Positions 127 through 27,600 of a stretch of DNA of 64,000 nucleotides are shown one piece after another. The stretch is from Auanema rhodensis (lineage: Eukaryota > Animalia > Nematoda), in the NCBI GenBank assembly GCA_964057225.1, contig OZ059898.1, positions 21,080,001 to 21,144,000 of the forward strand, in the 5' to 3' direction. The position numbers and the translations under genes are program-made. Position 1 is the first letter of the stretch. Every line of letters begins with the position of its first letter. Below the pieces are notes generated by a model. The model worked only from the letters and a program-made list of their open reading frames with translations, had not been told where the DNA came from and searched no databases.

Positions 127-3100
127 AGATAAAGAGATGCGGTTTTCAAAATTAGATTCCCCATGTCCATATTAGTCTAAAAACAAATTTTTATTGATAT
201 TGGTGCATGGTAACCATGACTTTGAAATTTACGTGAACTTTAATTTATGCTAATTAAATGTACACGTGATGTGCACTTGGTATGTAACTCGCTTCACGTG
301 AAAGATAAAGAGATGCGGTTTTCGAAATTAGATTCATCATGTCCATATTAGTCTAAAAACAAATTTTTATTGATATTGGTGCATGGTAACCATGACTTTG
401 AAATTTACGTGAACTTTAATTTATGCTTATTAAATGTACACGTGATGTGCACTTGGTATGTAACTCGCTTCACGTGAAAGATAAAGAGATGCGGTTTCCA
501 AAATTAGATTCCCCATGTACATATTAGTCTAAAAACAAATTTTTATTGATATTGGTTCATGGTAACCATGACTTTGAAATTTACGTGAACTTTAATTTAT
601 GCTAATTAAATGTACACGTGATGTGCACTTGGTATGTAACTCGCTGCACGTGAAAGATAAAGAGATGCGGTTTTCAAAATTAGATTCCCCATGTCCATAT
701 TAGTCTAAAAACAAATTTTTATTGATTTTGGTGCATGGTAACCATGACTTTGAAATTTACGTGAACTTTAATTTATGCTAATTAAATGTACACGTGATGT
801 GCACTTGGTATGTAACTCGCTTCACGTAAAAGATAAAGAGATGCGGTTTTCAAAGTTAGATTCCCCATGTCCATATTAGTCTAAAAACAAATTTTTATTG
901 ATATTGGTTCATGGTAACCATGACTTTGAAATTTACGTGAACTTTAATTTATGCTAATTAAATGTACACGTGATGTGCAATTGGTATGTAACTCGCTTCA
1001 CGTGAAAGATAAAGAGATGCGGTTTTCAAAATTAGATTCCCCATGTCCATATTAGTCTAAAAACAAATTTTTATTGATATTGGTGCATGGTAACCATGAC
1101 TTTGAAATTTACGTGAACTTTAATTTATGCTAATTAAATGTACACGTGATGTGCACTTGGTATGTAACTCGCTTCACGTGAAAGATAAAGAGATGCGGTT
1201 TTCAAAATTAGATTCCCCATGTCCATATTAGTCTAATAACAAATTTTTATTGATATTGGTTCATGGTAACCATGACTTTGAAATTTACGTGAACTTCAAT
1301 TTATGCTAATTAAATGTACACGTGATGTGCACTTGGTATGTAACTCGCTTCACGTGAAAGATAAAGAGATGCGGTTTTCAAAATTAGATTCCCCATGTCC
1401 ATATTAGTCTAAAAACAAATTTTTATTAATATTGGTGCATGGTAACCATGACTTTGAAATTTACGTGAACTTTAATTTATGCTAATTAAATGTACACGTG
1501 ATGTGCACTTGGTATGTAACTCGCTTCACGTGAAAGATAAAGAGATGCGGTTTTCAAAATTTGATTCCCCATGTCCATATTAGTCTAAAAACAATTTTTT
1601 ATTGATATTGGTGCATGGTAACCATGACTTTGAAATTTACGTGAACTTTAATTTATGCTAATTAAATGTACACGTGATGTGCACTTGGTATGTAACTCGC
1701 TTCACGTGAAAGATAAAGAGATGCGGTTTTCAAAATTTGATTCCCCATGTCCATATTAGTCTAAAAACAATTTTTTATTGATATTGGTGCATGGTAACCA
1801 TGACTTTGAAATTTACGTGAACTTTAATTTATGCTAATTAAATGTACACGTGATGTGCACTTGGTATGTAACTCGCTTCACGTGAAAGATAAAGAGATGC
1901 GGTTTTCAAAATTAGATTCATCATGTCCATATTAGTCTAAAAACAAATTTTCATTGATATTGGTTCATGGTAACCATGACTTTGAAATTTACGTGAACTT
2001 TAATTTATGCTAATTAAATGTACACGTGATGTGCAATTGGTATGTAACTCGCTTCACGTGAAAGATAAAGAGATGCGGTTTTCAAAATTAGATTCCCCAT
2101 GTCCATATTAGTCTAAAAACAAATTTTTATTGATATTGGTGCATGGTAACCATGACTTTGAAATTTACGTGAACTTTAATTTATGCTAATTAAATGTACA
2201 CGTGATGTGCACTTGGTATGTAACTCGCTTCACGTGAAAGATAAAGAGATGCGGTTTTCAAAATTAGATTCCCCATGTCCATATTAGTCTAATAACAAAT
2301 TTTTATTGATATTGGTTCATGGTAACCATGACTTTGAAATTTACGTGAACTTCAATTTATGCTAATTAAATGTACACGTGATGTGCACTTGGTATGTAAC
2401 TCGCTTCACGTGAAAGATAAAGAGATGCGGTTTTCAAAATTAGATTCCCCATGTCCATATTAGTCTAAAAACAAATTTTTATTAATATTGGTGCATGGTA
2501 ACCATGACTTTGAAATTTACGTGAACTTTAATTTATGCTAATTAAATGTACACGTGATGTGCACTTGGTATGTAACTCGCTTCACGTGAAAGATAAAGAG
2601 ATGCGGTTTTCAAAATTTGATTCCCCATGTCCATATTAGTCTAAAAACAATTTTTTATTGATATTGGTGCATGGTAACCATGACTTTGAAATTTACGTGA
2701 ACTTTAATTTATGCTAATTAAATGTACACGTGATGTGCACTTGGTATGTAACTCGCTTCACGTGAAAGATAAAGAGATGCGGTTTTCAAAATTAGATTCA
2801 TCATGTCCATATTAGTCTAAAAACAAATTTTTATTGATATTGGTGCATGGTAACCATGACTTTGAAATTTACGTGAACTTTAATTTATGCTAATTAAATG
2901 TACACGTGATGTGCACTTGGTATGTAACTCGCTTCACGTGAAAGATAAAGAGATGCGGTTTTCAAAAATAGATTCCCCATGTACATATTAGTCTAAAAAC
3001 AAATTTTTATTGATATTGGTTCATGGTAACCATGACTTTGAAATTAACGTGAACTTTAATTTATGCTAATTAAATGTACACGTGATGTGCACTTGGTATG

Positions 3101-6100: not shown

Positions 6101-9100
6101 TTCACGTGAAAGATAAAGAGATGCGGTTTTCAAAATTTGATTCCCCATGTCCATATTAGTCTAAAAACAAATTTTCATTGATATTGGTTCATGGTAACCA
6201 TGACTTTGAAATTTACGTGAACTTTAATTTATGCTAATTAAATGTACACGTGATGTGCTCTTGGTATGTAACTCGCTTCACGTGAAAGATAAAGAGATGC
6301 GGTTTTCAAAATTAGATTCCCCATGTCCATATTAGTCTAAAAACAAATTTTTATTGATATTGGTGCATGGTAACCATGACTTTGAAATTTACGTGAACTT
6401 TAATTCATGCTAATTAAATGTACACGTGATGTGCACTTGGTATGTAACTCGCTTCACGTGAAAGATAAAGAGATGCGGTTTTCAAAATTTGATTCCCCAT
6501 GTCCATATTAGTCTAAAAACAAATTTTCATTGATATTGGTTCATGGTAACCATGACTTTGAAATTTACGTGAACTTTAATTTATGCTAATTGAATGTACA
6601 CGTGATGTGCACTTGGTATGTAACTCGCTTCACGTGAAAGATAAAGAGATGCAGTTTTCAAAATTAGATTCATCATGTCCATATTAGTCTAAAAACAAAT
6701 TTTTATTGATATTGGTGCATGGTAACCATGACTTTGAAATTTACGTGAACTTTAATTTATGCTTATTAAATGTACACGTGATGTGCACTTGGTATGTAAC
6801 TCGCTTCACGTGAAAGATAAAGAGATGCGGTTTTCAAAATTAGATTCCCCATGTCCATATTAGTCTAAAAACAAATTTTTATTGATATTGGTGCATGGTA
6901 ACCATGACTTTGAAATTTACGTGAACTTTAATTTATGCTAATTAAATGTACACGTGATGTGCACTTGGTATGTAACTCGCTTCACGTGAAAGATAAAGAG
7001 ATACGGTTTTCAAAATTAGATTCCCCATGTCCATATTAGTCTAAAAACAAATTTTCATTGATATTGGTTCATGGTAACCATGACTTTGAAATTAACGTGA
7101 ACTTTAATTTATGCTAATTAAATGTACACGTGATGTGCACTTGGTATGTAACTCGCTTCACGTGAAAGATAAAGAGATACGGTTTTCAAAATTAGATTCC
7201 CCATGTCCATATTAGTCTAAAAACAAATTTTCATTGATATTGGTTCATGGTAACCATGACTTTGAAATTAACGTGAACTTTAATTTATGCTAATTAAATG
7301 TACACGTGATGTGCACTTGGTATGTAACTCGCTTCACGTGAAAGATAAAGAGATACGGTTTTCAAAATTAGATTCCCCATGTCCATATTAGTCTAAAAAC
7401 AAATTTTTATTGATATTGGTGCATGGTAACCATGACTTTGAAATTTACGTGAACTTTAATTTATGCTAATTAAATGTACACGTGATGTGCACTTGGTATG
7501 TAACTCGCTTCACGTGAAAGATAAAGAGATGCGGTTTTGAAAATTAGATTCCCCATGTCCATATTAGTCTAAAAACAAATTTTTATTGATATTGGTGCAT
7601 GGTAACCATGACTTTGAAATTTACGTGAACTTTAATTTATGCTAATTAAATGTACACGTGATGTGCACTTGGTATGTAACTCGCTTCACGTGAAAGATAA
7701 AGAGATGCGGTTTTCAAAATTAGATTCCCCATGTCCATATTAGTCTAAAAACAAATTTTTATTGATATTGGTGCATGGTAACCATGACTTTGAAATTTAC
7801 GTGAACTTTAATTTATGCTAATTAAATGTACACGTGATGTGCACTTGGTATGTAACTCGCTTCACGTGAAAGATAAAGAGATGCGGTTTTCGAAATTAGA
7901 TTCATCATGTCCATATTAGTCTAAAAACAAATTTTTATTGATATTGGTGCATGGTAACCATGACTTTGAAATTTACGTGAACTTTAATTTATGCTTATTA
8001 AATGTACACGTGATGTGCACTTGGTATGTAACTCGCTTCACGTGAAAGATAAAGAGATGCGGTTTTCAAAATTAGATTCCCCATGTACATATTAGTCTAA
8101 AAACAAATTTTTATTGATATTGGTTCATGGTAACCATGACTTTGAAATTTACGTGAACTTTAATTTATGCTAATTAAATGTACACGTGATGTGCACTTGG
8201 TATGTAACTCGCTTCACGTGAAAGATAAAGAGATGCGGTTTTCAAAATTAGATTCCCCATGTCCATATTAGTCTAAAAACAAATTTTTATTGATATTGGT
8301 TCATGGTAACCATGACTTTGAAATTTACGTGAACTTTAATTTATGCTAATTAAATGTACACGTGATGTGCACTTGGTATGTAACTCGCTTCACGTGAAAG
8401 ATAAAGAGATGCGGTTTTCAAAATTAGATTCCCCATGTCCATATTAGTCTAAAAACAAATTTTTATTGATATTGCTTTATGGTAACCATGACTTTGAAAT
8501 TTACGTGAACTTTAATTTATGCTAATTAAATGTACACGTGATGTGCACTTGGTATGTAACTCGCTTCACGTGAAAGATAAAGAGATGCGGTTTTCAAAAT
8601 TAGATTCCCCATGTCCATATTAGTCTAAAAACAAATTTTTATTGATTTTGGTGCATGGTAACCATGACTTTGAAATTTACGTGAACTTTAATTTATGCTA
8701 ATTAAATGTACACGTGATGTGCACTTGGTATGTAACTCGCTTCACGTAAAAGATAAAGAGATGCGGTTTTCAAAATTAGATTCCCCATGTCCATATTAGT
8801 CTAAAAACAAATTTTTATTGATATTGGTTCATGGTAACCATGACTTTGAAATTTACGTGAACTTTAATTTATGCTAATTAAATGTACACGTGATGTGCAA
8901 TTGGTATGTAACTCGCTTCACGTGAAAGATAAAGAGATGCGGTTTTCAAAATTAGATTCCCCATGTCCATATTAGTCTAAAAACAAATTTTTATTGATAT
9001 TGGTGCATGGTAACCATGACTTTGAAATTTACGTGAACTTTAATTTATGCTAATTAAATGTACACGTGATGTGCACTTGGTATGTAACTCGCTTCACGTG

Positions 9101-11776
9101 AAAGATAAAGAGATGCGGTTTTCAAAATTAGATTCCCCATGTCCATATTAGTCTAATAACAAATTTTTATTGATATTGGTTCATGGTAACCATGACTTTG
9201 AAATTTACGTGAACTTCAATTTATGCTAATTAAATGTACACGTGATGTGCACTTGGTATGTAACTCGCTTCACGTGAAAGATAAAGAGATGCGGTTTTCA
9301 AAATTAGATTCCCCATGTCCATATTAGTCTAAAAACAAATTTTTATTGATATTGGTGCATGGTAACCATGACTTTGAAATTTACGTGAACTTTAATTTAT
9401 GCTAATTAAATGTACACGTGATGTGCACTTGGTATGTAACTCGCTTCACGTGAAAGATAAAGAGATGCGGTTTTCAAAATTTGATTCCCCATGTCCATAT
9501 TAGTCTAAAAACAATTTTTTATTGATATTGGTGCATGGTAACCATGACTTTGAAATTTACGTGAACTTTAATTTATGCTAATTAAATGTACACGTGATGT
9601 GCACTTGGTATGTAACTCGCTTCACGTGAAAGATAAAGAGATGCGGTTTTCAAAATTTGATTCCCCATGTCCATATTAGTCTAAAAACAATTTTTTATTG
9701 ATATTGGTGCATGGTAACCATGACTTTGAAATTTACGTGAACTTTAATTTATGCTAATTAAATGTACACGTGATGTGCACTTGGTATGTAACTCGCTTCA
9801 CGTGAAAGATAAAGAGATGCGGTTTTCAAAATTAGATTCATCATGTCCATATTAGTCTAAAAACAATTTTTTATTGATATTGGTGCATGGTAACCATGAC
9901 TTTGAAATTTACGTGAACTTTAATTTATGCTAATTAAATGTACACGTGATGTGCACTTGGTATGTAACTCGCTTCACGTGAAAGATAAAGAGATGCGGTT
10001 TTCAAAATTTGATTCCCCATGTCCATATTAGTCTAAAAACAAATTTTCATTGATATTGGTTCATGGTAACCATGACTTTGAAATTTACGTGAACTTTAAT
10101 TTATGCTAATTAAATGTACACGTGATGTGCACTTGGTATGTAACTCGCTTCACGTGAAAGATAAAGAGATGCGGTTTTCAAAATTAGATTCATCATGTCC
10201 ATATTAGTCTAAAAACAAATTTTTATTGATATTGGTGCATGGTAACCATGACTTTGAAATTTACGTGAACTTTAATTTATGCTTATTAAATGTACACGTG
10301 ATGTGCAATTGGTATGTAACTCGCTTCACGTGAAAGATAAAGAGATGCGGTTTTCAAAAATAGATTCCCCATGTACATATTAGTCTAAAAACAAATTTTT
10401 ATTGATATTGGTTCATGGTAACCATGACTTTGAAATTAACGTGAACTTTAATTTATGCTAATTAAATGTACACGTGATGTGCACTTGGTATGTAACTCGC
10501 TTCACGTGAAAGATAAAGAGATACGGTTTTCAAAATTAGATTCCCCATGTCCATATTAGTCTAAAAACAAATTTTTATTGATATTGGTGCATGGTAACCA
10601 TGACTTTGAAATTTACGTGAACTTTAATTTATGCTAATTAAATGTACACGTGATGTGCACTTGGTATGTAACTCGCTTCACGTGAAAGATAAAGAGATGC
10701 GGTTTTCAAAATTAGATTCCCCATGTCCATATTAGTCTAAAAACAAATTTTTATTGATATTGGTGCATGGTAACCATGACTTTGAAATTTACGTGAACTT
10801 TAATTTATGCTAATTAAATGTACACGTGATGTGCACTTGGTATGTAACTCGCTTCACGTGAAAGATAAAGAGATGCGGTTTTCAAAATTAGATTCCCCAT
10901 GTCCATATTAGTCTAAAAACAAATTTTTATTGATTTTGGTGCATGGTAACCATGACTTTGAAATTTACGTGAACTTTAATTTATGCTAATTAAATGTACA
11001 CGTGATGTGCACTTGGTATGTAACTCGCTTCACGTAAAAGATAAAGAGATGCGGTTTTCAAAATTAGATTCCCCATGTCCATATTAGTCTAAAAACAAAT
11101 TTTTATTGATATTGGTTCATGGTAACCATGACTTTGAAATTTACGTGAACTTCAATTTATGCTAATTAAATGTACACGTGATGTGCACTTGGTATGTAAC
11201 TCGCTGCACGTGAAAGATGAAGAGATGCGGTTTTCAAAATTAGATTCCCTATGTCCATATTAGTCTAAAAACAAATTTTTATTGATATTGGTTCATGGTA
11301 ACCATGACTTTGAAATTTACGTGAACTTTAATTTATGCTAATTAAATGTACACGTGATGTGCACTTGGTATGTAACTCGCTTCACGTGAAAGATAAAGAG
11401 ATGCGGTTTTCAAAATTAGATTCTTCATGTCCATATTAGTCTAAAAACAAATTTTTATTGATATTGGTTCATGGTGACCATGACTTTGAAATTTACGTGA
11501 ACTTTAATTTATGCTAATTAAATGTACACGTGATGTGCAATTGGTATGTAACTCGCTTCACGTGAAAGATAAAGAGATGCGGTTTTCAAAATTAGATTCC
11601 CCATGTCCATATTAGTCTAAAAACAAATTTTTGTTGATATTGGTGCATGGTAACCATGACTTTGAAATTTACGTGAACTTTAATTTATGCTAATTAAATG
11701 TACACGTGATGTGCACTTGGTATGTAACTCGCTTCACGTGAAAGATAAAGAGATGCGGTTTTCGAAATTAGATTCC

Positions 11777-11827
11777 CCATGTCCATATTAGTCTAAAAAC
11801 AAATTTTTAGACTAATATGGATCATGG
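11777..11827. other. Perfect 18-bp inverted repeat (4-nt loop), copy 1; 177-bp monomer
   Basis: tccatattagtctaaaaa (11782-11799) - caaa - tttttagactaatatgga (11804-11821), flanked by ccatg / t-catgg. Confidence 0.97.
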
Positions 11828-13889
11828 TAACCATGACTTTGAAATTTACGTGAACTTCAATTTATGCTAATTAAATGTACACGTGATGTGCACTTGGTAT
11901 GTAACTCGCTTCACGTGAAAGATAAAGAGATGCGGTTTTCAAAATTTGTTTCCCCATGTCCATATTAGTCTAAAAACAAATTTTCATTGATATTGGTTCA
12001 TGGTAACCATGACTTTGAAAATTACGTGAACTTCAATTTATGCTAATTAAATGTACACGTGATGTGCACTTGGTATGTAACTCGCTTCACGTGAAAGATG
12101 AAGAGATGCGGTTTTCAAAATTAGATTCCCTATGTCCATATTAGTCTAAAAACAAATTTTTATTGATATTGGTTCATGGTAACCATGACTTTGAAATTTA
12201 CGTGAACTTTAATTTATGCTAATTAAATGTACACGTGATGTGCACTTGGTATGTAACTCGCTTCACGTGAAAGATAAAGAGATGCGGTTTTCAAAATTAG
12301 ATTCCCCATGTCCATATTAGTCTAAAAACAAATTTTTATTGATATTGGTGCATGGTAACCATGACTTTGAAATTTACGTGAACTTTAATTTATGCTAATT
12401 AAATGTACACGTGATGTGCCCTTGGTATGTAACTCGCTTCACGTGAAAGATAAAGAGATGCGGTTTTCAAAATTAGATTCCCCATGTCCATATTAGTCTA
12501 AAAACAATTTTTTATTGATATTGGTGCATGGTAACCATGACTTTGAAATTTACGTGAACTTTAATTTATGCTAATTAAATGTACACGTGATGTGCACTTG
12601 GTATGTAACTCGCTTCACGTGAAAGATAAAGAGATGCGGTTTTCAAAATTAGATTCCCTATGTCCATATTAGTCTAAAAACAAATTTTTATTGATATTGG
12701 TTCATGGTAACCATGACTTTGAAATTTACGTGAACTTTAATTTATGCTAATTAAATGTACACGTGATGTGCAATTGGTATGTAACTCGCTTCACGTGAAA
12801 GATAAAGAGATGCGGTTTTCAAAATTAGATTCCCCATGTCCATATTAGTCTAAAAACAAATTTTTATTGATATTGGTGCATGGTAACCATGACTTTGAAA
12901 TTTACGTGAACTTTAATTTATGCTAATTAAATGTACACGTGATGAGCACTTGGTATGTAACTCGCTTCACGTGAAAGATAAAGAGATGCGGTTTTCAAAA
13001 TTAGATTCCCCATGTCCATATTAGTCTAATAACAAATTTTTATTGATATTGGTTCATGGTAACCATGACTTTGAAATTTACGTGAACTTCAATTTATGCT
13101 AATTAAATGTACACGTGATGTGCACTTGGTATGTAACTCGCTTCACGTGAAAGATGAAGAGATGCGGTTTTCAAAATTAGATTCCCTATGTCCATATTAG
13201 TCTAAAAACAAATTTTTATTGATATTGGTTCATGGTAACCATGACTTTGAAATTTACGTGAACTTTAATTTATGCTAATTAAATGTACACGTGATGTGCA
13301 CTTGGTATGTAACTCGCTTCACGTGAAAGATAAAGAGATGCGGTTTTCAAAATTAGATTCCCCATGTCCATATTAGTCTAAAAACAAATTTTTATTGATA
13401 TTGGTGCATGGTAACCATGACTTTGAAATTTACGTGAACTTTAATTTATGCTAATTAAATGTACACGTGATGTGCCCTTGGTATGTAACTCGCTTCACGT
13501 GAAAGATAAAGAGATGCGGTTTTCAAAATTAGATTCCCCATGTCCATATTAGTCTAAAAACAATTTTTTATTGATATTGGTGCATGGTAACCATGACTTT
13601 GAAATTTACGTGAACTTTAATTTATGCTAATTAAATGTACACGTGATGTGCACTTGGTATGTAACTCGCTTCACGTGAAAGATAAAGAGATGCGGTTTTC
13701 AAAATTAGATTCCCCATGTCCATATTAGTCTAAAAACAAATTTTTGTTGATATTGGTGCATGGTAACCATGACTTTGAAATTTACGTGAACTTTAATTTA
13801 TGCTAATTAAATGTACACGTGATGTGCACTTGGTATGTAACTCGCTTCACGTGAAAGATAAAGAGATGCGGTTTTCAAAATTAGATTCC

Positions 13890-13938
13890 CCATGTCCATA
13901 TCCAAATTTACAAATTTTTAGACTAATATGGATCATGG
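13890..13938. other. Hairpin-type right arm with disrupted left arm (net -1 bp)
   Basis: ccatgtccatatccaaatttacaaatttttagactaatatggatcatgg: the right arm is the converted type; left-arm tagtctaaaa is replaced by ccaaattt. Confidence 0.93.
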
Positions 13939-15648
13939 TAACCATGACTTTGAAATTTACGTGAACTTCAATTTATGCTAATTAAATGTACACGTGATGT
14001 GCACTTGGTATGTAACTCGCTTCACGTGAAAGATGAAGAGATGCGGTTTTCAAAATTAGATTCCCTATGTTCATATTAGTCTAAAAACAAATTTTTATTG
14101 ATATTGGTGCATGGTAACCATGACTTTGAAATTTACGTGAACTTCAATTTATGCTAATTAAATGTACACGTGATGTGCACTTGGTATGTAACTCGCTTCA
14201 CGTGAAAGATGAAGAGATGCGGTTTTCAAAATTAGATTCCCTATGTCCATATTAGTCTAAAAACAAATTTTTATTGATATTGGTTCATGGTAACCATGAC
14301 TTTGAAATTTACGTGAACTTTAATTTATGCTAATTAAATGTACACGTGATGTGCACTTGGTATGTAACTCGCTTCACGTGAAAGATAAAGAGATGCGGTT
14401 TTCAAAATTAGATTCCCCATGTCCATATTAGTCTAAAAACAAATTTTTATTGATATTGGTGCATGGTAACCATGACTTTGAAATTTACGTGAACTTTAAT
14501 TTATGCTAATTAAATGTACACGTGATGTGCCCTTGGTATGTAACTCGCTTCACGTGAAAGATAAAGAGATGCGGTTTTCAAAATTAGATTCCCCATGTCC
14601 ATATTAGTCTAAAAACAATTTTTTATTGATATTGGTGCATGGTAACCATGACTTTGAAATTTACGTGAACTTTAATTTATGCTAATTAAATGTACACGTG
14701 ATGTGCACTTGGTATGTAACTCGCTTCACGTGAAAGATAAAGAGATGCGGTTTTCAAAATTAGATTCCCTATGTCCATATTAGTCTAAAAACAAATTTTT
14801 ATTGATATTGGTGCATGGTAACCATGACTTTGAAATTTACGTGAACTTTAATTTATGCTAATTAAATGTACACGTGATGTGCACTTGGTATGTAACTCGC
14901 TTCACGTGAAAGATAAAGAGATGCGGTTTTCAAAATTAGATTCCCCATGTCCATATTAGTCTTAAAACAAATTTTTATTGATATTGGTTCATGGTAACCA
15001 TGACTTTGAAATTTACGTGAACTTTAATTTATGCTAATTAAATGTACACGTGATGTGCACTTGGTATGTAACTCGCTTCACGTGAAAGATAAAGAGATGC
15101 GGTTTTCAAAATTAGATTCCCCATGTCCATATTAGTCTAAAAACAAATTTTTATTGATATTGGTTCATGGTAACCATGACTTTGAAATTTACGTGAACTT
15201 TAATTTATGCTAATTAAATGTACACGTGATGTGCACTTGGTATGTAACTCGCTTCACGTGAAAGATAAAGAGATGCGGTTTTCAAAATTAGATTCCCCAT
15301 GTCCATATTAGTCTAAAAACAAATTTTTATTGATATTGGTTCATGGTGACCATGACTTTGAAATTTACGTGAACTTTAATTTATGCTAATTAAATGTACA
15401 CGTGATGTGCAATTGGTATGTAACTCGCTTCACGTGAAAGATAAAGAGATGCGGTTTTCAAAATTAGATTCCCCATGTCCATATTAGTCTAAAAACAAAT
15501 TTTTGTTGATATTGGTGCATGGTAACCATGACTTTGAAATTTACGTGAACTTTAATTTATGCTAATTAAATGTACACGTGATGTGCACTTGGTATGTAAC
15601 TCGCTTCACGTGAAAGATAAAGAGATGCGGTTTTCAAAATTAGATTCC

Positions 15649-15699
15649 CCATGTCCATATTAGTCTAAAAACAAATTTTTAGACTAATATGGATCATGG
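15649..15699. other. Perfect 18-bp inverted repeat, copy 2 intact; 177-bp monomer
   Basis: Arms 15654-15671 and 15676-15693, identical to the 11777 copy. Confidence 0.97.
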
Positions 15700-17409
15700 T
15701 AACCATGACTTTGAAATTTACGTGAACTTCAATTTATGCTAATTAAATGTACACGTGATGTGCACTTGGTATGTAACTCGCTTCACGTGAAAGATGAAGA
15801 GATGCGGTTTTCAAAATTAGATTCCCTATGTCCATATTAGTCTAAAAACAAATTTTTATTGATATTGGTGCATGGTAACCATGACTTTGAAATTTACGTG
15901 AACTTTAATTTATGCTAATTAAATGTACACGTGATGTGCACTTGGTATGTAACTCGCTTCACGTGAAAGATAAAGAGATGCGGTTTCCAAAATTAAATTC
16001 CCCATGTCCATATTAGTCTAAAAACAAATTTTTATTGATATTGGTTCATGGTAACCATGACTTTGAAATTTACGTGAACTTCAATTTATGCTAATTAAAT
16101 GTACACGTGATGTGCACTTGGTATGTAACTCGCTTCACGTGAAAGATGAAGAGATGCGGTTTTCAAAATTAGATTCCCTATGTCCATATTAGTCTAAAAA
16201 CAAATTTTTATTGATATTGGTTCATGGTAACCATGACTTTGAAATTTACGTGAACTTTAATTTATGCTAATTAAATGTACACGTGATGTGCCCTTGGTAT
16301 GTAACTCGCTTCACGTGAAAGATAAAGAGATGCGGTTTTCAAAATTAGATTCCCCATGTCCATATTAGTCTAAAAACAATTTTTTATTGATATTGGTGCA
16401 TGGTAACCATGACTTTGAAATTTACGTGAACTTTAATTTATGCTAATTAAATGTACACGTGATGTGCACTTGGTATGTAACTCGCTTCACGTGAAAGATA
16501 AAGAGATGCGGTTTTCAAAATTAGATTCCCTATGTCCATATTAGTCTAAAAACAAATTTTTATTGATATTGGTGCATGGTAACCATGACTTTGAAATTTA
16601 CGTGAACTTTAATTTATGCTAATTAAATGTACACGTGATGTGCACTTGGTATGTAACTCGCTTCACGTGAAAGATAAAGAGATGCGGTTTTCAAAATTAG
16701 ATTCCCCATGTCCATATTAGTCTTAAAACAAATTTTTATTGATATTGGTTCATGGTAACCATGACTTTGAAATTTACGTGAACTTTAATTTATGCTAATT
16801 AAATGTACACGTGATGTGCACTTGGTATGTAACTCGCTTCACGTGAAAGATAAAGAGATGCGGTTTTCAAAATTAGATTCCCCATGTCCATATTAGTCTA
16901 AAAACAAATTTTTATTGATATTGGTTCATGGTAACCATGACTTTGAAATTTACGTGAACTTTAATTTATGCTAATTAAATGTACACGTGATGTGCACTTG
17001 GTATGTAACTCGCTTCACGTGAAAGATAAAGAGATGCGGTTTTCAAAATTAGATTCCCCATGTCCATATTAGTCTAAAAACAAATTTTTATTGATATTGG
17101 TTCATGGTGACCATGACTTTGAAATTTACGTGAACTTTAATTTATGCTAATTAAATGTACACGTGATGTGCAATTGGTATGTAACTCGCTTCACGTGAAA
17201 GATAAAGAGATGCGGTTTTCAAAATTAGATTCCCCATGTCCATATTAGTCTAAAAACAAATTTTTGTTGATATTGGTGCATGGTAACCATGACTTTGAAA
17301 TTTACGTGAACTTTAATTTATGCTAATTAAATGTACACGTGATGTGCACTTGGTATGTAACTCGCTTCACGTGAAAGATAAAGAGATGCGGTTTTCAAAA
17401 TTAGATTCC

Positions 17410-17460
17410 CCATGTCCATATTAGTCTAAAAACAAATTTTTAGACTAATATGGATCATGG
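17410..17460. other. Perfect 18-bp inverted repeat, copy 3 intact; 177-bp monomer
   Basis: Arms 17415-17432 and 17437-17454. Confidence 0.97.
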
Positions 17461-20400
17461 TAACCATGACTTTGAAATTTACGTGAACTTCAATTTATGC
17501 TAATTAAATGTACACGTGATGTGCACTTGGTATGTAACTCGCTTCACGTGAAAGATGAAGAGATGCGGTTTTCAAAATTAGATTCCCTATGTCCATATTA
17601 GTCTAAAAACAAATTTTAATTGATATTGGTGCATGGTAACCATGACTTTGAAATTTACGTGAACTTTAATTTATGCTAATTAAATGTACACGTGATGTGC
17701 ACTTGGTATGTAACTCGCTTCACGTGAAAGATAAAGAGATGCGGTTTCCAAAATTAGATTCCCCATGTCCATATTAGTCTAAAAACAAATTTTTATTGAT
17801 ATTGGTTCATGGTAACCATGACTTTGAAATTTACGTGAACTTCAATTTATGCTAATTAAATGTACACGTGATGTGCACTTGGTATGTAACTCGCTTCACG
17901 TGAAAGATGAAGAGATGCGGTTTTCAAAATTAGATTCCCTATGTCCATATTAGTCTAAAAACAAATTTTTATTGATATTGGTTCATGGTAACCATGACTT
18001 TGAAATTTACGTGAACTTTAATTTATGCTAATTAAATGTACACGTGATGTGCACTTGGTATGTAACTCGCTTCACGTGAAAGATAAAGAGATGCGGTTTT
18101 CAAAATTAGATTCCCCATGTCCATATTAGTCTAAAAACAAATTTTTATTGATATTGGTGCATGGTAACCATGACTTTGAAATTTACGTGAACTTTAATTT
18201 ATGCTAATTAAATGTACACGTGATGTGCCCTTGGTATGTAACTCGCTTCACGTGAAAGATAAAGAGATGCGGTTCTCAAAATTAGATTCCCCATGTCCAT
18301 ATTAGTCTAAAAACAATTTTTTATTGATATTGGTGCATGGTAACCATGACTTTGAAATTTACGTGAACTTTAATTTATGCTAATTAAATGTACACGTGAT
18401 GTGCACTTGGTATGTAACTCGCTTCACGTGAAAGATAAAGAGATGCGGTTTTCAAAATTAGATTCCCTATGTCCATATTAGTCTAAAAACAAATTTTTAT
18501 TGATATTGGTGCATGGTAACCATGACTTTGAAATTTACGTGAACTTTAATTTATGCTAATTAAATGTACACGTGATGTGCACTTGGTATGTAACTCGCTT
18601 CACGTGAAAGATAAAGAGATGCGGTTTTCAAAATTAGATTCCCCATGTCCATATTAGTCTTAAAACAAATTTTTATTGATATTGGTTCATGGTAACCATG
18701 ACTTTGAAATTTACGTGAACTTTAATTTATGCTAATTAAATGTACACGTGATGTGCACTTGGTATGTAACTCGCTTCACGTGAAAGATAAAGAGATGCGG
18801 TTTTCAAAATTAGATTCCCCATGTCCATATTAGTCTAAAAACAAATTTTTATTGATATTGGTTCATGGTAACCATGACTTTGAAATTTACGTGAACTTTA
18901 ATTTATGCTAATTAAATGTACACGTGATGTGCACTTGGTATGTAACTCGCTTCACGTGAAAGATAAAGAGATGCGGTTTTCAAAATTAGATTCCCCATGT
19001 CCATATTAGTCTAAAAACAAATTTTTATTGATATTGGTTCATGGTAACCATGACTTTGAAATTTACGTGAACTTTAATTTATGCTAATTAAATGTACACG
19101 TGATGTGCACTTGGTATGTAACTCGCTTCACGTGAAAGATAAAGAGATGCGGTTTTCAAAATTAGATTCCCCATGTCCATATTAGTCTAAAAACAAATTT
19201 TTATTGATATTGGTTCATGGTAACCATGACTTTGAAATTTACGTGAACTTTAATTTATGCTAATTAAATGTACACGTGATGTGCAATTGGTATGTAACTC
19301 GCTTCACGTGAAAGATAAAGAGATGCGGTTTTCAAAATTAGATTCCCCATGTCCATATTAGTCTAAAAACAAATTTTTGTTGATATTGGTGCATGGTAAC
19401 CATGACTTTGAAATTTACGTGAACTTTAATTTATGCTAATTAAATGTACACGTGATGTGCACTTGGTATGTAACTCGCTTCACGTGAAAGATGAAGAGAT
19501 GCGGTTTTCAAAATTAGATTCCCCATGTCCATATTAGTCTAAAAACAAATTTTTATTGATATTGGTGCATGGTAACCATGACTTTGAAATTTACGTGAAC
19601 TTTAATTTATGCTAATTAAATGTACACGTGATGTGCACTTGGTATGTAACTCGCTTCACGTGAAAGATAAAGAGATGCGGTTTCCAAAATTAGATTCCCC
19701 ATGTCCATATTAGTCTAAAAACAAATTTTTATTGATATTGGTTCATGGTAACCATGACTTTGAAATTTACGTGAACTTCAATTTATGCTAATTAAATGTA
19801 CACGTGATGTGCACTTGGTATGTAACTCGCTTCACGTGAAAGATGAAGAGATGCGGTTTTCAAAATTAGATTCCCTATGTCCATATTAGTCTAAAAACAA
19901 ATTTTTATTGATATTGGTTCATGGTAACCATGACTTTGAAATTTACGTGAACTTTAATTTATGCTAATTAAATGTACACGTGATGTGCACTTGGTATGTA
20001 ACTCGCTTCACGTGAAAGATAAAGAGATGCGGTTTTCAAAATTAGATTCCCCATGTCCATATTAGTCTAAAAACAAATTTTTATTGATATTGGTGCATGG
20101 TAACCATGACTTTGAAATTTACGTGAACTTTAATTTATGCTAATTAAATGTACACGTGATGTGCCCTTGGTATGTAACTCGCTTCACGTGAAAGATAAAG
20201 AGATGCGGTTCTCAAAATTAGATTCCCCATGTCCATATTAGTCTAAAAACAATTTTTTATTGATATTGGTGCATGGTAACCATGACTTTGAAATTTACGT
20301 GAACTTTAATTTATGCTAATTAAATGTACACGTGATGTGCACTTGGTATGTAACTCGCTTCACGTGAAAGATAAAGAGATGCGGTTTTCAAAATTAGATT

Positions 20401-22690
20401 CCCTATGTCCATATTAGTCTAAAAACAAATTTTTATTGATATTGGTGCATGGTAACCATGACTTTGAAATTTACGTGAACTTTAATTTATGCTAATTAAA
20501 TGTACACGTGATGTGCACTTGGTATGTAACTCGCTTCACGTGAAAGATAAAGAGATGCGGTTTTCAAAATTAGATTCCCCATGTCCATATTAGTCTTAAA
20601 ACAAATTTTTATTGATATTGGTTCATGGTAACCATGACTTTGAAATTTACGTGAACTTTAATTTATGCTAATTAAATGTACACGTGATGTGCACTTGGTA
20701 TGTAACTCGCTTCACGTGAAAGATAAAGAGATGCGGTTTTCAAAATTAGATTCCCCATGTCCATATTAGTCTAAAAACAAATTTTTATTGATATTGGTTC
20801 ATGGTAACCATGACTTTGAAATTTACGTGAACTTTAATTTATGCTAATTAAATGTACACGTGATGTGCACTTGGTATGTAACTCGCTTCACGTGAAAGAT
20901 AAAGAGATGCGGTTTCCAAAATTAGATTCCCCATGTCCATATTAGTCTAAAAACAAATTTTTATTGATATTGGTTCATGGTAACCATGACTTTGAAATTT
21001 ACGTGAACTTCAATTTATGCTAATTAAATGTACACGTGATGTGCACTTGGTATGTAACTCGCTTCACGTGAAAGATGAAGAGATGCGGTTTTCAAAATTA
21101 GATTCCCTATGTCCATATTAGTCTAAAAACAAATTTTTATTGATATTGGTTCATGGTAACCATGACTTTGAAATTTACGTGAACTTTAATTTATGCTAAT
21201 TAAATGTACACGTGATGTGCACTTGGTATGTAACTCGCTTCACGTGAAAGATAAAGAGATGCGGTTTTCAAAATTAGATTCCCCATGTCCATATTAGTCT
21301 AAAAACAAATTTTTATTGATATTGGTGCATGGTAACCATGACTTTGAAATTTACGTGAACTTTAATTTATGCTAATTAAATGTACACGTGATGTGCCCTT
21401 GGTATGTAACTCGCTTCACGTGAAAGATAAAGAGATGCGGTTCTCAAAATTAGATTCCCCATGTCCATATTAGTCTAAAAACAATTTTTTATTGATATTG
21501 GTGCATGGTAACCATGACTTTGAAATTTACGTGAACTTTAATTTATGCTAATTAAATGTACACGTGATGTGCACTTGGTATGTAACTCGCTTCACGTGAA
21601 AGATAAAGAGATGCGGTTTTCAAAATTAGATTCCCTATGTCCATATTAGTCTAAAAACAAATTTTTATTGATATTGGTGCATGGTAACCATGACTTTGAA
21701 ATTTACGTGAACTTTAATTTATGCTAATTAAATGTACACGTGATGTGCACTTGGTATGTAACTCGCTTCACGTGAAAGATAAAGAGATGCGGTTTTCAAA
21801 ATTAGATTCCCCATGTCCATATTAGTCTTAAAACAAATTTTTATTGATATTGGTTCATGGTAACCATGACTTTGAAATTTACGTGAACTTTAATTTATGC
21901 TAATTAAATGTACACGTGATGTGCACTTGGTATGTAACTCGCTTCACGTGAAAGATAAAGAGATGCGGTTTTCAAAATTAGATTCCCCATGTCCATATTA
22001 GTCTAAAAACAAATTTTTATTGATATTGGTTCATGGTAACCATGACTTTGAAATTTACGTGAACTTTAATTTATGCTAATTAAATGTACACGTGATGTGC
22101 ACTTGGTATGTAACTCGCTTCACGTGAAAGATAAAGAGATGCGGTTTTCAAAATTAGATTCCCCATGTCCATATTAGTCTAAAAACAAATTTTTATTGAT
22201 ATTGGTTCATGGTAACCATGACTTTGAAATTTACGTGAACTTTAATTTATGCTAATTAAATGTACACGTGATGTGCACTTGGTATGTAACTCGCTTCACG
22301 TGAAAGATAAAGAGATGCGGTTTTCAAAATTAGATTCCCCATGTCCATATTAGTCTAAAAACAAATTTTTATTGATATTGGTTCATGGTAACCATGACTT
22401 TGAAATTTACGTGAACTTTAATTTATGCTAATTAAATGTACACGTGATGTGCAATTGGTATGTAACTCGCTTCACGTGAAAGATAAAGAGATGCGGTTTT
22501 CAAAATTAGATTCCCCATGTCCATATTAGTCTAAAAACAAATTTTTGTTGATATTGGTGCATGGTAACCATGACTTTGAAATTTACGTGAACTTTAATTT
22601 ATGCTAATTAAATGTACACGTGATGTGCACTTGGTATGTAACTCGCTTCACGTGAAAGATAAAGAGATGCGGTTTTCAAAATTAGATTCC

Positions 22691-22741
22691 CCATGTCCAT
22701 ATTAGTCTAAAAACAAATTTTTAGACTAATATGGATCATGG
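22691..22741. other. Perfect 18-bp inverted repeat, copy 4 intact; 177-bp monomer
   Basis: Arms 22696-22713 and 22718-22735. Confidence 0.97.
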
Positions 22742-23411
22742 TAACCATGACTTTGAAATTTACGTGAACTTCAATTTATGCTAATTAAATGTACACGTGA
22801 TGTGCACTTGGTATGTAACTCGCTTCACGTGAAAGATGAAGAGATGCGGTTTTCAAAATTAGATTCCCTATGTCCATATTAGTCTAAAAACAAATTTTTA
22901 TTGATATTGGTGCATGGTAACCATGACTTTGAAATTTACGTGAACTTTAATTTATGCTAATTAAATGTACACGTGATGTGCACTTGGTATGTAACTCGCT
23001 TCACGTGAAAGATAAAGAGATGCGGTTTTCAAAATTAGATTCCCTATGTCCATATTAGTCTAAAAACAAATTTTTATTGATATTGGTGCATGGTAACCAT
23101 GACTTTGAAATTTACGTGAACTTTAATTTATGCTAATTAAATGTACACGTGATGTGCACTTGGTATGTAACTCGCTTCACGTGAAAGATAAAGAGATGCG
23201 GTTTTCAAAATTAGATTCCCTATGTCCATATTAGTCTAAAAACAAATTTTTATTGATATTGGTGCATGGTAACCATGACTTTGAAATTTACGTGAACTTT
23301 AATTTATGCTAATTAAATGTACACGTGATGTGCACTTGGTATGTAACTCGCTTCACGTGAAAGATAAAGAGATGCGGTTTTCAAAATTAGATTCCCCATG
23401 TCCATATTAGT

Positions 23412-23527
23412 CTAAAAACAAATTTTTAATGTATGTACACGTGATGTGCACTTGGTATGTAACTCGCTTCACGTGAAAGATGAAGAGATGCGGTTTTCAA
23501 AATTAGATTCCCTATGTCCATATTAGT
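23412..23527. repeat. Truncated 116-bp monomer (60-bp net deletion)
   Basis: ctaaaaacaaattttta-atgt-atgtacacgtg: consensus positions 18-81 are lost and atgt is duplicated. The next monomer starts at 23528. Confidence 0.96.
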
Positions 23528-24699
23528 CTAAAAACAAATTTTTATTGATATTGGTGCATGGTAACCATGACTTTGAAATTTACGTGAACTTTAATTTATG
23601 CTAATTAAATGTACACGTGATGTGCACTTGGTATGTAACTCGCTTCACGTGAAAGATAAAGAGATGCGGTTTTCAAAATTAGATTCCCTATGTCCATATT
23701 AGTCTAAAAACAAATTTTTATTAATATTGGTGCATGGTAACCATGACTTTGAAATTTACGTGAACTTTAATTTATGCTAATTAAATGTACACGTGATGTG
23801 CACTTGGTATGTAACTCGCTTCACGTGAAAGATAAAGAGATGCGGTTTTCAAAATTAGATTCCCTATGTCCATATTAGTCTTAAAACAAATTTTTATTGA
23901 TATTGGTTCATGGTAACCATGACTTTGAAATTTACGTGAACTTTAATTTATGCTAATTAAATGTACACGTGATGTGCACTTGGTATGTAACTCGCTTCAC
24001 GTGAAAGATAAAGAGATGCGGTTTTCAAAATTAGATTCCCCATGTCCATATTAGTCTAAAAACAAATTTTTATTGATATTGGTTCATGGTAACCATGACT
24101 TTGAAATTTACGTGAACTTTAATTTATGCTAATTAAATGTACACGTGATGTGCACTTGGTATGTAACTCGCTTCACGTGAAAGATAAAGAGATGCGGTTT
24201 TCAAAATTAGATTCCCCATGTCCATATTAGTCTAAAAACAAATTTTTATTGATATTGGTGCATGGTAACCATGACTTTGAAATTTACGTGAACTTTAATT
24301 TATGCTAATTAAATGTACACGTGATGTGCACTTGGTATGTAACTCGCTTCACGTGAAAGATAAAGAGATGCGGTTTTCAAAATTAGATTCCCTATGTCCA
24401 TATTAGTCTAAAAACAAATTTTTATTGATATTGGTGCATGGTAACCATGACTTTGAAATTTACGTGAACTTTAATTTATGCTAATTAAATGTACACGTGA
24501 TGTGCACTTGGTATGTAACTCGCTTCACGTGAAAGATAAAGAGATGCGGTTTTCAAAATTAGATTCCCTATGTCCATATTAGTCTTAAAACAAATTTTTA
24601 TTGATATTGGTTCATGGTAACCATGACTTTGAAATTTACGTGAACTTTAATTTATGCTAATTAAATGTACACGTGATGTGCACTTGGTATGTAACTCGC

Positions 24700-27600
24700 T
24701 TCACGTGAAAGATAAAGAGATGCTGTTTTCAAAATTAGATTCCCCATGTCCATATTAGTCTAAAAACAAATTTTTATTGATATTGGTTCATGGTAACCAT
24801 GACTTTGAAATTTACGTGAACTTTAATTTATGCTAATTAAATGTATACGTGATGTGCACTTGGTATGTAACTCGCTTCACGTGAAAGATAAAGAGATGCG
24901 GTTTTAAAAATTAGATTCCCCATGTCCATATTAGTCTAAAAACAAATTTGTATTGATATTGGTTCATGGTAACCATGACTTTGAAATTTACGTGAACTTT
25001 AATTTATGCTAATTAAATGTACACGTGATGTGCACTTGGTATGTAACTCGCTTCACGTGAAAGATAAAGAGATGCGGTTTTCAAAATTAGATTCCCCATG
25101 TCCATATTAGTCTAAAAACAAATTTTTATTGATATTGGTGCATGGTAACCATGACTTTGAAATTTACGTGAACTTTAATTTATGCTAATTAAATGTACAC
25201 GTGATGTGCACTTGGTATGTAACTCGCTTCACGTGAAAGATAAAGAGATGCGGTTTTCAAAATTAGATTCCTCATGTCCATATTAGTTTAAAAACAAATT
25301 TTGATTGATATTGGTGCATGGTAACCATGACTTTGAAATTTACGTGAACTTTAATTTATGCTAATTAAATGTACACGTGATGTGCACTTGGTATGTAACT
25401 CGCTTCACGTGAAAGATAAAGAGATGCGGTTTTCAAAATTAGATTCCCCATGTCCATATTAGTCTAAAAACAAATTTTTATTGATATTGGTTCATGGTAA
25501 CCATGACTTTGAAATTTACGTGAACTTTAATTTATGCTAATTAAATGTACACGTGATGTGCACTTGGTATGTAACTCGCTTCACGTGAAAGATAAAGAGA
25601 TGCGGTTTTCAGAATTAGATTCCCCATGTCCATATTAGTCTAAAAACAAATTTTTATTGATATTGGTGCATGGTAACCATGACTTTGAAATTTACGTGAA
25701 CTTTAATTTATGCTAATTAAATGTACACGTGATGTGCACTTGGTATGTAACTCGCTTCACGTGAAAGATAAAGAGATGCGGTTTTCAAAATTAGATTCCC
25801 CATGTCCATATTAGTTTAAAAACAAATTTTTATTGATATTGGTGCATGGTAACCATGACTTTGAAATTTACGTGAACTTTAATTTATGCTAATTAAATGT
25901 ACACGTGATGTGCACTTGGTATGTAACTCGCTTCACGTGAAAGATAAAAAGATGCGGTTTTCAAAATTAGATTCCCCATGTGCATATTAGTCTAAAAACA
26001 AATTTTTATTGATATTGGTTCATGGTAACCATGACTTTAAAATTTACGTGAACTTTAATTTATGCTAATTAAATGTACACGTGATGTGCACTTGGTATGT
26101 AACTCGCTTCACGTGAAAGATAAAGAGATGCGGTTTTCAAAATTAGATTCCCCATGTCCATATTAGTCTAAAAACAAATTTTTATTGATATTGGTTCATG
26201 GTAACCATGACTTTGAAATTTACGTGAACTTTAATTTATGCTAATTAAATGTACACGTGATGTGCACTTGGTATGTAACTCGCTTCACGTGAAAGATAAA
26301 GAGATGCGGTTTTCAAAATTAGATTCCCCATGTCCATATTAGTCTAAAAACAAATTTTTATTGATATTGGTGCATGGTAACCATGACTTTGAAATTTACG
26401 TGAACTTTAATTTATGCTAATTAAATGTACACGTGATGTGCACTTGGTATGTAACTCGCTTCACGTGAAAGATAAAGAGATGCGGTTTTCAAAATTAGAT
26501 TCCCCATGTCCATATTAGTCTAAAAACAAATTTTTATTGATATTGGTGCATGGTAACAATGACTTTGAAATTTACGTGAACTTTAATTTATGCTAATTAA
26601 ATGTACACGTGATGTGCACTTGGTATGTAACGCGCTTCACGTGAAAGATAAAGAGATGCGGTTTTCAAAATTAGATTCCCCATGTCCATATTAGTCTAAA
26701 AACAAATTTTTATTGATATTGGTTCATGGTAACCATGACTTTGAAATTTACGTGAACTTTAATTTATGCTAATTAAATGTATACGTGATGTGCACTTGGT
26801 ATGTAACTCGCTTCACGTGAAAGATAAAGAGATGCGGTTTTCAAAATTAGATTCCCCATGTCCATATTAGTCTAAAAACAAATTTTTATTGATATTGGTT
26901 CATGGTAACCATGACTTTGAAATTTACGTGAACTTTAATTTATGCTAATTAAATGTACACGTGATGTGCACTTGGTATGTAACTCGCTTCACGTGAAAGA
27001 TAAAAAGATGCGGTTTTCAAAATTAGATTCCCCATGTCCATATTAGTCTAAAAACAAATTTTTATTGATATTGGTGCATGGTAACCATGACTTTGAAATT
27101 TACGTGAACTTTAATTTATGCTAATTAAATGTACACGTGATGTGCACTTGGTATGTAACTCGCTTCACGTGAAAGATGAAGAGATGCGGTTTTCAAAATT
27201 AGATTCCCCATGTCCATATTAGTCTAAAAACAAATTTTTATTGATATTGGTTCATGGTAACCATGACTTTGAAATTTACGTGAACTTTAATTTATGCTAA
27301 TTAAATGTACACGTGATGTGCACTTGGTATGTAACTCGCTTCATGTGAAAGATAAAGAGATGCGGTTTTCAAAATTAGATTCCCCATGTCCATATTAGTC
27401 TAAAAACAAATTTTTATTGATATTGGTTCATGGTAACCATGACTTTGAAATTTACGTGAACTTTAATTTATGCTAATTAAATGTATACGTGATGTGCACT
27501 TGGTATGTAACTCGCTTCACGTGAAAGATAAAGAGATGCGGTTTTCAAAATTAGATTCCCCATGTCCATATTAGTCTAAAAACAAATTTTTATTGATATT

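Follow-up and report, generated by a model that had tools for sequence, protein, structure and literature searches.

Satellite monomers of Auanema rhodense carry a perfect hairpin that probably arose by one short-range template switch and spread by local block duplication

Template switching at imperfect inverted repeats is an established source of mutation, described as quasi-palindrome-associated or short-range template-switch mutation (QPM/TSM) from reporters in E. coli and yeast and from comparisons of great apes and of RNA hairpins (PMC7202029, PMC8794818, PMC7954356, PMC8604942), and the hairpin reported here, from the AT-1 satellite of A. rhodense, is a clean natural example of this already known class of change. 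As in those systems, clustered changes and small indels amount to one reverse-complement copy of the neighbouring arm, with the arms homogenised, the stem extended, the spacer kept and the register restored. Unlike those cases, the AT-1 event sits in a multi-megabase germline-restricted satellite in which it was apparently amplified by array dynamics, its ancestral state is read from ~156,000 paralogous monomers instead of an outgroup, and the inverted repeat that existed beforehand is a weak one whose nucleus is only 6 bp. The polymerase-theta deletion-insertions of C. elegans (PMC5068794, PMC4032859) and of SD-MMEJ (PMC5728401) are a second point of comparison. The AT-1 change is likewise a short deletion with a ~10-nt reverse-complement insert from within 20 bp, and neighbouring scars resemble the direct-templated members of that class. 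However, the deleted and inserted lengths in AT-1 fit the hairpin geometry in two independent events, which is not expected of end joining.

The window, by which we mean the whole 64-kb stretch of DNA that was analysed, is one tandem array without genes (period 176 bp, 363 copies by TRF), and 364 monomers, all in the same orientation, were phased across positions 1..64000 of the + strand. The monomer matches the AT-1_Cy3 FISH probe (A-elim) exactly and is thus the 176-bp AT-1 satellite of A. rhodense, which is germline-restricted, chromosome-terminal and eliminated from the soma, somatic nuclei being devoid of AT-1 from the 12-cell stage on as seen by FISH (bioRxiv 10.64898/2026.08.27.747507). 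Contig C6 ends 0.5 Mb away from the window. Genome-wide (181 Mb searched), AT-1 left arms number 84,109 in forward and 71,784 in reverse orientation, a total of ~156,000 monomers. On the same contig, 414 kb away from the window, the array switches orientation (C6:21558126-21558187), with stuttered re-copying of TTTTTAGACT.

The consensus junction has the structure proposed in the first-pass annotation, and the base before CATGG is either G or T, giving two main forms with 104 and 90 copies, respectively. Pairing at this junction already comprises TAAAAA and TTTTTA beside the loop, together with CCA/TGG and CCATG/CATGG; the TAAAAA/TTTTTA complementarity beside the 4-nt loop, which could prime a switch, is present in every consensus junction. 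The description of this junction as a quasi-palindrome is only marginally upheld: its self-reverse-complement alignment is better than that of 97% of shuffles, but its fold energy (-4.3 to -5.0 kcal/mol, z ~ -0.8) is no better than that of shuffles, so that a stable pre-existing hairpin is not indicated. The whole monomer is a weak degenerate palindrome centred on the loop, with a self-reverse-complement score of 12 vs -7.5 +/- 7.7 for shuffles.

Five junctions in the window, at 11777, 13890, 15649, 17410 and 22691, depart from this consensus as had been claimed, in that the right-arm segment TTGATATTGGT (11 nt) is replaced by GACTAATATGGA (12 nt), a net gain of 1 bp. On the + strand GACTAATATGGA occurs exactly five times in the window (11810, 13921, 15682, 17443 and 22724), and in all five copies it is the exact reverse complement of left-arm sequence, a 12-nt match that is not attributable to chance (4^-12). 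In the first copy (11777..11827, + strand), CCATG (11777-11781) is followed by the left arm (11782-11799), the loop (11800-11803), the right arm (11804-11821), a bulge T (11822) and CATGG (11823-11827), and the converted tract, at 11810-11821, has its reverse complement at 11782-11793. The third (15649..15699, tract 15682-15693), fourth (17410..17460, tract 17443-17454) and fifth (22691..22741, tract 22724-22735) copies, also on the + strand, fold in the same way, as an 18-bp stem with the 4-nt loop CAAA, the 1-nt bulge T and 5 further pairs. This perfect hairpin reaches -20.5 kcal/mol (z = -10.3), with 0 of 200 shuffles as good, vs about -5 kcal/mol for the consensus.

An 18-bp stem had been reported for all five copies, with an identical sequence throughout. 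This holds for four hairpins and, as regards identity, for the converted tract of all five, but not for the second junction (13890..13938, + strand), where the tract (13921-13932) is intact and the left arm is secondarily altered, leaving a fold of only -6.4 kcal/mol. Its left arm reads TCCATAT-CCAAATTT-A vs TCCATAT-TAGTCTAAAA-A elsewhere and is 2 bp shorter; 10 nt (TAGTCTAAAA) were exchanged for 8 nt (CCAAATTT), and CAAATTT in the insert duplicates the loop and the start of the arm beside it. Recombination from an existing variant was rejected as the source of this arm, its 23-mer being unique in the 181-Mb genome. It is the sole clustered left-arm change among 646 monomers, in which no further clustered multi-base changes were found.

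Mapped across the assembly, the variant k-mer is a rare minority form and not the majority allele. The tract was found in the five window copies and in one independent case on contig C7 (C7:18,005,800), that is, four perfect copies and one decayed copy in the window and one independent copy on C7 among ~156,000 monomers. As read from the paralogous monomers of this one assembly, the perfect form is derived and not a relic, because only four perfect copies and one decayed copy exist among so many monomers. The C7 conversion has the same direction in a different local sequence background and extends through CATGGG, including the bulge, with a net length change of 0. The proposal of one event is sufficient for the window copies, which a single switch followed by duplication would explain, but not for the genome, in which a second conversion occurred on C7. 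Conversions of the right arm thus number two and those of the left arm none, as right-arm-type palindromes, in which the left arm has been converted to the right-arm type, were not found anywhere in the genome. A genome-wide search for partial or other conversions (loop plus TTTTTAGA) returned, within AT-1, only the four window copies, the remaining six matches all lying outside AT-1. A local inversion, which would leave left-arm-type and right-arm-type palindromes at opposite ends and reversed monomers between them, was rejected given the uniform orientation of the window and the lack of right-arm-type palindromes genome-wide.

The five variant monomers (nos. 66, 78, 88, 98 and 128) are confined to a locally amplified patch, delimited by the monomer-type string, flank similarity and marker junctions, that spans monomers 65-129 (11473..22915, + strand); phasing of the monomers reproduced the spacing of 12, 10, 10 and 30 monomers that had been noted. 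Units of the patch are irregular, 9-12 monomers long, and open with a rare marker monomer, after which comes the hairpin monomer. The marker monomer is distinguished by a rare A-to-G change, and its junction TTTTTGTTGATATTGG occurs at 11628, 13741, 15500, 17261, 19374 and 22542, the only six instances in 114 kb (646 monomers). All five variant monomers lie directly downstream of a TTTTTGTTGATATTGG monomer, and the chance of four further independent conversions landing after the marker is ~(6/363)^4. Flanking monomers at matching offsets are 1-3 edits apart vs a background of 4.4, of the five variant monomers, three are identical to one another, and the body of the variant monomer is that of the type-1 (T-type) consensus monomer (35 window copies), except for the 11-to-12-nt block. 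The view that one event was spread by duplication is thus borne out by the identical tract, the T-type consensus body, the shared rare marker and the similar flanks. The 40 kb before the window and the 10 kb after it contained no marker monomers and no unconverted ancestor unit.

The sixth unit start (monomers 109-110, 19219..19570, + strand) consists of a marker followed by an ordinary G-type (type 2) monomer with no hairpin, in a unit that has one monomer fewer. It may be either a crossover hybrid that has lost the hairpin or a member of the pre-conversion lineage, and it does not fit a simple ancestor, nor a hybrid from a single crossover. That a single crossover does not fully cover this unit without the tract counts against the best explanation. 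The patch had also been described as part of a satellite higher-order repeat (HOR), which did not hold up: there is no array-wide period, and duplications of 7, 9, 10, 12 and 18 monomers make up the patch in an irregular mosaic. Mean edit distance is flat by lag: for monomers 0-132 it is 3.9-4.6 and dips only slightly at lags 10-11, and for the rest it is 2.2-2.7. Neither a regular n-monomer period nor units more alike than the monomers within them were found. A dimeric HOR, as a TRF period of 352 bp would have it, was rejected, the lag profile having no odd/even difference.

These sequences give good support to an account in which a single short-range template switch was followed by duplication of local blocks, and the hairpin is probably a neutral, functionless scar of that one switch. 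The clustered change, equivalent to about five separate edits, is directed wholly towards left-arm complementarity, which it increases; an exact reverse-complement source lies nearby, and the unconverted ancestral state is present in the paralogues. The net change of +1 in the window corresponds to a left arm of 18 nt vs a right arm of 17 nt with a stop before the bulge base, and the length change follows arm geometry on C7 as well. On the strand that reads left arm, loop and right arm, the nascent 3' end, having just copied the loop CAAA and TTTTTA, would detach during replication or repair synthesis, fold back onto its own TAAAAA to form a 6-bp stem with a 4-nt loop, copy 12 nt of the left arm (to give GACTAATATGGA) and rejoin the original template in register, immediately before the T preceding CATGG. 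The loop is uninverted, so the switch would have started after it, and since the bulge T is retained, the ancestor was T-type. To return to the template before the bulge T, synthesis would have to resume from a 3' end with a mismatch or minimal pairing, a requirement that counts against the template-switch account. The switch would have occurred once only, in a T-type consensus monomer just downstream of the A-to-G-marked monomer, after which unequal exchange or segmental duplication, in blocks of 7 to 18 monomers, may have placed the pair of marker and hairpin at the start of six units over 11 kb. The tract persists in five of these, one of which later lost its hairpin by the small deletion-insertion in the left arm. 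The first-pass annotation went further in stating that the junction folds back in vivo; this goes beyond the sequence, as a transient fold-back of the nascent strand suffices, without a cruciform in chromatin.

The footprint of the tract, a deletion with a reverse-complement insert templated within ~20 bp, is also compatible with polymerase-theta snap-back repair. This raises the possibility, which we consider unlikely, that a double-strand break in the right arm exposed a 3' end, TTTTTA, that annealed to TAAAAA by snap-back and served polymerase theta as a primer before the ends were joined (TMEJ or SD-MMEJ), a route that would itself leave 11 nt deleted and a templated reverse-complement insert of 12 nt. 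POLQ-dependent deletion-insertions in C. elegans carry ~10-bp inserts templated <=20 bp from the break, and snap-back (reverse-complement) inserts are known, albeit as a minor class there (PMC5068794, PMC4032859, PMC5728401). Within the window, two scars resemble such repair, namely the 13890 left arm (10 nt lost, 8 gained) and a truncated monomer in which 64 nt were lost and ATGT gained, beginning directly after TTTTTA at 23428, and the stuttered re-copying at the C6 orientation switch fits it too. Sequence outcome alone does not separate break repair from a replication slip. However, end joining leaves the sizes of deletion and insert uncoupled, whereas the window and C7 events (+1 and 0) both restore register, which favours a replicative switch. 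How many copies the patch contains, and whether each is genuine, depends on a HiFi/hifiasm assembly that has ~29x coverage in repeats. Arrays of satellite DNA easily collapse or expand falsely in assemblies, and the identity of three of the five variant monomers would be compatible with false duplication of one real copy; even so, an artefact of this kind, or a fold-back chimera or polishing error, is very improbable. SMRTbell fold-back artefacts invert entire molecules and not 12 nt in register, the five copies lie in units of unequal length (12, 10, 10, 12 and more monomers) that bear different private substitutions, one copy has a unique secondary change, and the C7 event arose in a different sequence background; moreover, most HiFi reads map uniquely within repeat blocks, according to the genome's source paper. 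We hold it to be just as improbable that the tract came in trans, by ectopic conversion or template switching from an AT-1 monomer of opposite orientation on a sister chromatid, in another array or in a nearby inverted domain. Arrays of both orientations exist, the orientation switch on C6 could supply an inverted donor, and the product would be the same as that of intramolecular fold-back. Against this, an inverted donor would share only 6 nt and 5 nt of homology with the two flanks of the tract, the reciprocal product is lacking genome-wide, and the donor would need the same arm sequence that the left arm, 4 nt away, already supplies.

In the dyad-symmetry, or non-B DNA, model of centromeric satellites, the monomer has a dyad that is able in principle to form a cruciform. 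The AT-1 monomer shares such a dyad; it differs in being terminal, germline-restricted and eliminated from the soma, with the perfect dyad in 5 of ~156,000 monomers. A relevance to centromere specification had been suggested for the hairpin, a suggestion contradicted by the exact match to AT-1 (A-elim), its somatic elimination and the position 0.5 Mb from the C6 end. A centromeric satellite with a functional dyad would lie at the centromere and persist in dividing somatic cells; AT-1, as terminal, germline-restricted and soma-eliminated DNA, lies outside that argument, and a centromere role for it is neither known nor likely. The elimination motif of A. rhodense is itself palindromic: the Sequence For Elimination (SFE), the PDE break motif, is a 29-bp degenerate palindrome that requires a GGC-N3-GCC core (PMC13060919). 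GGC/GCC is absent from the hairpin centre, AAAAACAAATTTTT, and the hairpin was therefore rejected as an SFE. More generally, it is scarcely credible that the perfect palindrome is functional or selected, as a protein-binding dyad, an elimination break site or a centromere-related non-B element, or is an ancestral relic. The weak palindromy of the whole monomer around the loop and the palindromic nature of the elimination motif would be in keeping with a function. However, the perfect form is held by only 5 of ~156,000 monomers, all in one 11-kb patch and one of them already decayed, the elimination core is missing, and somatic cells discard AT-1; a relic, for its part, would not be expected to agree with today's left-arm consensus at 12 of 12 positions, inside a monomer that itself has today's consensus. 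Nothing points to a function of the hairpin, and it has no bearing on centromere specification.

Our results show that satellite arrays can serve as mutation recorders of complex events, as the ancestral state, the source template, the tract ends and the later fate of the change (amplification and one decay) can all be read from paralogues in one assembly. It is possible, though on balance doubtful, that strands misalign recurrently in the Auanema germline at the AT-1 junction, with its A5-loop-T5 nucleus as the hotspot. If this were the case, the ~156,000 near-identical germline-restricted monomers would constitute a natural, selection-free reporter of template switching in an animal germline, from which its rate, direction and strand bias could be measured, as could the instability of the resulting perfect palindromes. 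The reading arises from several scars that begin or end within the same few bases, and those near the nucleus are two independent hairpin-perfecting conversions in the same direction, one hairpin-destroying deletion-insertion, the 64-nt deletion with its templated insert and the orientation switch with its stuttered re-copying.

An exact word search of the window recovered the variant right arm GACTAATATGGA five times on the + strand (n = 5; starts at 11810, 13921, 15682, 17443 and 22724), and monomer phasing placed it in monomers 66, 78, 88, 98 and 128, at intervals of 12, 10, 10 and 30 monomers, which confirms the copies and spacing described in the first-pass annotation. Window counts also upheld its account of the junction (left arm, loop CAAA and right arm, between CCATG and CATGG): G or T precedes CATGG in the consensus, the two main forms being present in 104 and 90 copies, and the right-arm change from TTGATATTGGT to GACTAATATGGA adds 1 bp. 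Read as its reverse complement, the converted tract reproduces the opening 12 nt of the left arm exactly. Folding, which had been proposed as a check, clearly separated the two states: as single-stranded DNA, the 11777 junction forms an 18-bp stem closed by a 4-nt loop and, beyond a 1-nt bulge, 5 further pairs (-20.5 kcal/mol, z = -10.3), whereas two consensus junctions gave -5.0 and -4.3 kcal/mol, and shuffled sequence folds equally well as these. When the 51-nt consensus junction was aligned with its own reverse complement, the score was matched by 28 of 1,000 shuffles. The consensus inverted repeat is weak, and the pre-existing state is a priming nucleus rather than a stable hairpin. The original observation is genuine, but the number of perfect hairpins is four, not the five first claimed. 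In the copy at 13890, the left arm has changed from TAGTCTAAAA to CCAAATTT (2 bp shorter; altered bases 13897-13906), and the junction folds at -6.4 kcal/mol and is not a hairpin. This deletion-insertion has no second occurrence in the 181-Mb genome.

Apart from the 11-to-12-nt block, the hairpin-variant monomer is identical to the second commonest monomer type (T before CATGG, 35 copies), so that its ancestor is directly visible. Written as separate edits, the change would require about five indels or substitutions, every one toward complementarity with the left arm. This clustered, complementarity-raising change bears the signature classically left by template switching at a quasi-palindrome (PMC7202029, PMC8794818, PMC7954356, PMC8604942). 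Because the loop is not inverted, copying from the alternative template would have begun past it. TAAAAA and TTTTTA flank the loop and can form a 6-bp stem with a 4-nt loop, and we propose that, 3' of the loop, synthesis passed at this stem onto the left arm as template. The bulge T is the T of the ancestor; since copying of the left arm would have yielded GGA-CATGG, synthesis would have resumed on the original template immediately before this T. The 12-nt exact reverse complement, the visible ancestor and the retained loop make the previously suggested template-switch origin well supported. The variant adds a new and very clean example of a mutation type already known, in a recently described nematode satellite that is germline-restricted.

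A single event followed by duplication, as the first-pass annotation had proposed, is likewise well supported. A rare marker junction, TTTTTGTTGATATTGG, lies in the monomer immediately ahead of 5/5 variant monomers; it occurs 6 times in the window and 156 times genome-wide, with no copy in the 40 kb upstream or the 10 kb downstream of the window. The chance that independent events would land four more times beside one of 6 marked monomers among 363 is about 7e-8. Flanking monomers at matching offsets are 1 to 3 edits apart, compared with a background of 4.4, and the flanks of monomers 88 and 98 are identical over seven monomers. As for the label of a satellite higher-order repeat (HOR), local block duplication stands but a regular HOR does not: the amplified patch (11,473-22,915) is an irregular mosaic with units of 12, 10, 10, 12, 9, 9 and more monomers and nested 7- and 18-monomer duplications in the monomer-type string, and the profile of edit distance by monomer lag has a shallow dip at lags 10-11 and nothing more. 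After the sixth marked monomer, at 19,219, the next monomer is an ordinary one with G before CATGG and the unit is one monomer shorter; this next monomer resembles a hybrid between the hairpin monomer and its successor, to which a single crossover fits inexactly.

A genome-wide k-mer count, also suggested earlier, confined the perfect junction to the window, as a 31-mer across loop, tract and CATGG matched only the four perfect copies. Palindrome searches of the genome (left arm, loop and reverse left arm, allowing up to 2 mismatches or a spacer of variable length) added one single-copy site only, at C7:18,005,812-18,005,849 on another contig, where the array runs in the opposite orientation and local monomers carry the loop CAGT (ACTG on the + strand of the locus) and TTTTTACTGAT. 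The tract there is longer, CTGATATTGGTGCATGGT to GACTAATATGGACATGGG, with no net change in length (0 bp) and no bulge, and its 24-bp arms fold at -25.3 kcal/mol. Given the different local background, the longer tract and the lack of a bulge, this is a separate, independent event, alike in kind and in direction, the right arm becoming a match to the left. Genome-wide searches found no opposite conversion, of left arm to match right, and no shorter or partial conversions; the remaining matches to the loop plus TTTTTAGA fall outside the satellite. Within this genome the perfect form is not a majority allele elsewhere, an outcome that the first-pass annotation had considered: it comprises the four window copies and the C7 site, among about 155,900 left arms (<=1 mismatch; 84,109 forward and 71,784 reverse).

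The earlier wording, "replication or repair," takes in two routes, of which a replicative fold-back switch is probably the one behind the main event. Polymerase-theta end joining with snap-back synthesis could also have made the tract; in Caenorhabditis elegans, scars of this polymerase carry inserts of ~10 nt templated <=20 bp from the junction, reverse-complement inserts being a minor class (PMC5068794; PMC4032859, PMC5728401). Theta-like scars are found in and near the window. At 13890, the CAAATTT inserted in the left arm directly repeats the adjoining loop and arm start. In a truncated monomer (23268-23560), loop CAAA and TTTTTA are followed right after 23,428 by a jump to ATGT and ATGTACACG, a loss of 64 nt together with a gain of 4 nt that repeat the adjoining ATGT. 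A head-to-head orientation switch of the satellite inside the left arm (C6:21,558,126-21,558,187), the only junction of its type in the genome, has stuttered TTTTTAGACT copies, with the partial copies AAAAATTTGTTTTTAGACT, GTTTTTAGACT and TTAGACT ahead of it. End joining, however, leaves deletion and insert sizes uncoupled, whereas the window and C7 conversions both restore register exactly according to arm lengths. Because register is restored in both independent conversions, the replicative switch is favored, and snap-back repair seems unlikely as the source of the tract.

Monomer orientation is uniform in the window and no reciprocal palindrome was found, which excludes a local inversion. 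A PDE break motif was rejected, the AT-only hairpin center having no GGC-N3-GCC core, which that motif requires. An assembly artifact is unlikely, as judged from the assembly itself, in view of the distinct flanks, the unique secondary change in one copy and the independent event on another contig.

The AT-1_Cy3 ("A-elim") fluorescence in situ hybridization (FISH) probe has 13 exact matches to the monomer in 3 kb of sequence (bioRxiv 10.64898/2026.08.27.747507). The same preprint describes a 180.9-Mb HiFi/hifiasm germline assembly of Auanema rhodense, places AT-1, the "autosomal terminal" repeat, on all autosomes, and finds it gone from somatic nuclei by FISH from the 12-cell stage on. The probe match, the loss from the soma, the autosomal-terminal placement and the position of the window on contig C6 (21.64 Mb), whose end is 0.5 Mb away, establish that the satellite is germline-restricted and terminal. 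These properties, and a preprint with no mention of centromeres, speak against the proposed link to centromere specification. By the left-arm count (<=1 mismatch), AT-1 totals ~27 Mb in both orientations, which amounts to 15% of the assembly. Contig C1 starts within an AT-1-type array.

A single tandem array with a 176-bp unit fills the entire 64-kb window and was phased into 364 monomers, 363 of 175-177 bp and 1 truncated near 23,430. Mean pairwise edit distance per monomer is ~4.3 in the first 132 monomers and ~2.5 in the remainder, and the truncated monomer divides these two domains. For 23433-64000, TRF gave a 352-bp period at 98% identity; a dimeric HOR was rejected because odd/even alternation is absent from the lag profile, and the region consists of monomers of very high homogeneity, among which the monomer-type string reveals duplications of local blocks. 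A monomer (e.g., 62001-62176) aligned with its own reverse complement, centered on the CAAA loop, scored 12 (shuffles, -7.5 +/- 7.7; maximum, 13), which weakly supports the whole monomer as a degenerate palindrome. The deletion in the truncated monomer and the conversion tracts begin at the same base. Clustered multi-base changes among 646 monomers (114 kb) comprise the five conversions, the truncated monomer and the 13890 left arm, the sole such left-arm change. A complex change inside an arm is present in 1/5 hairpin monomers versus 0/~640 ordinary monomers, a single case that is suggestive of palindrome-provoked breakage in hairpin monomers.
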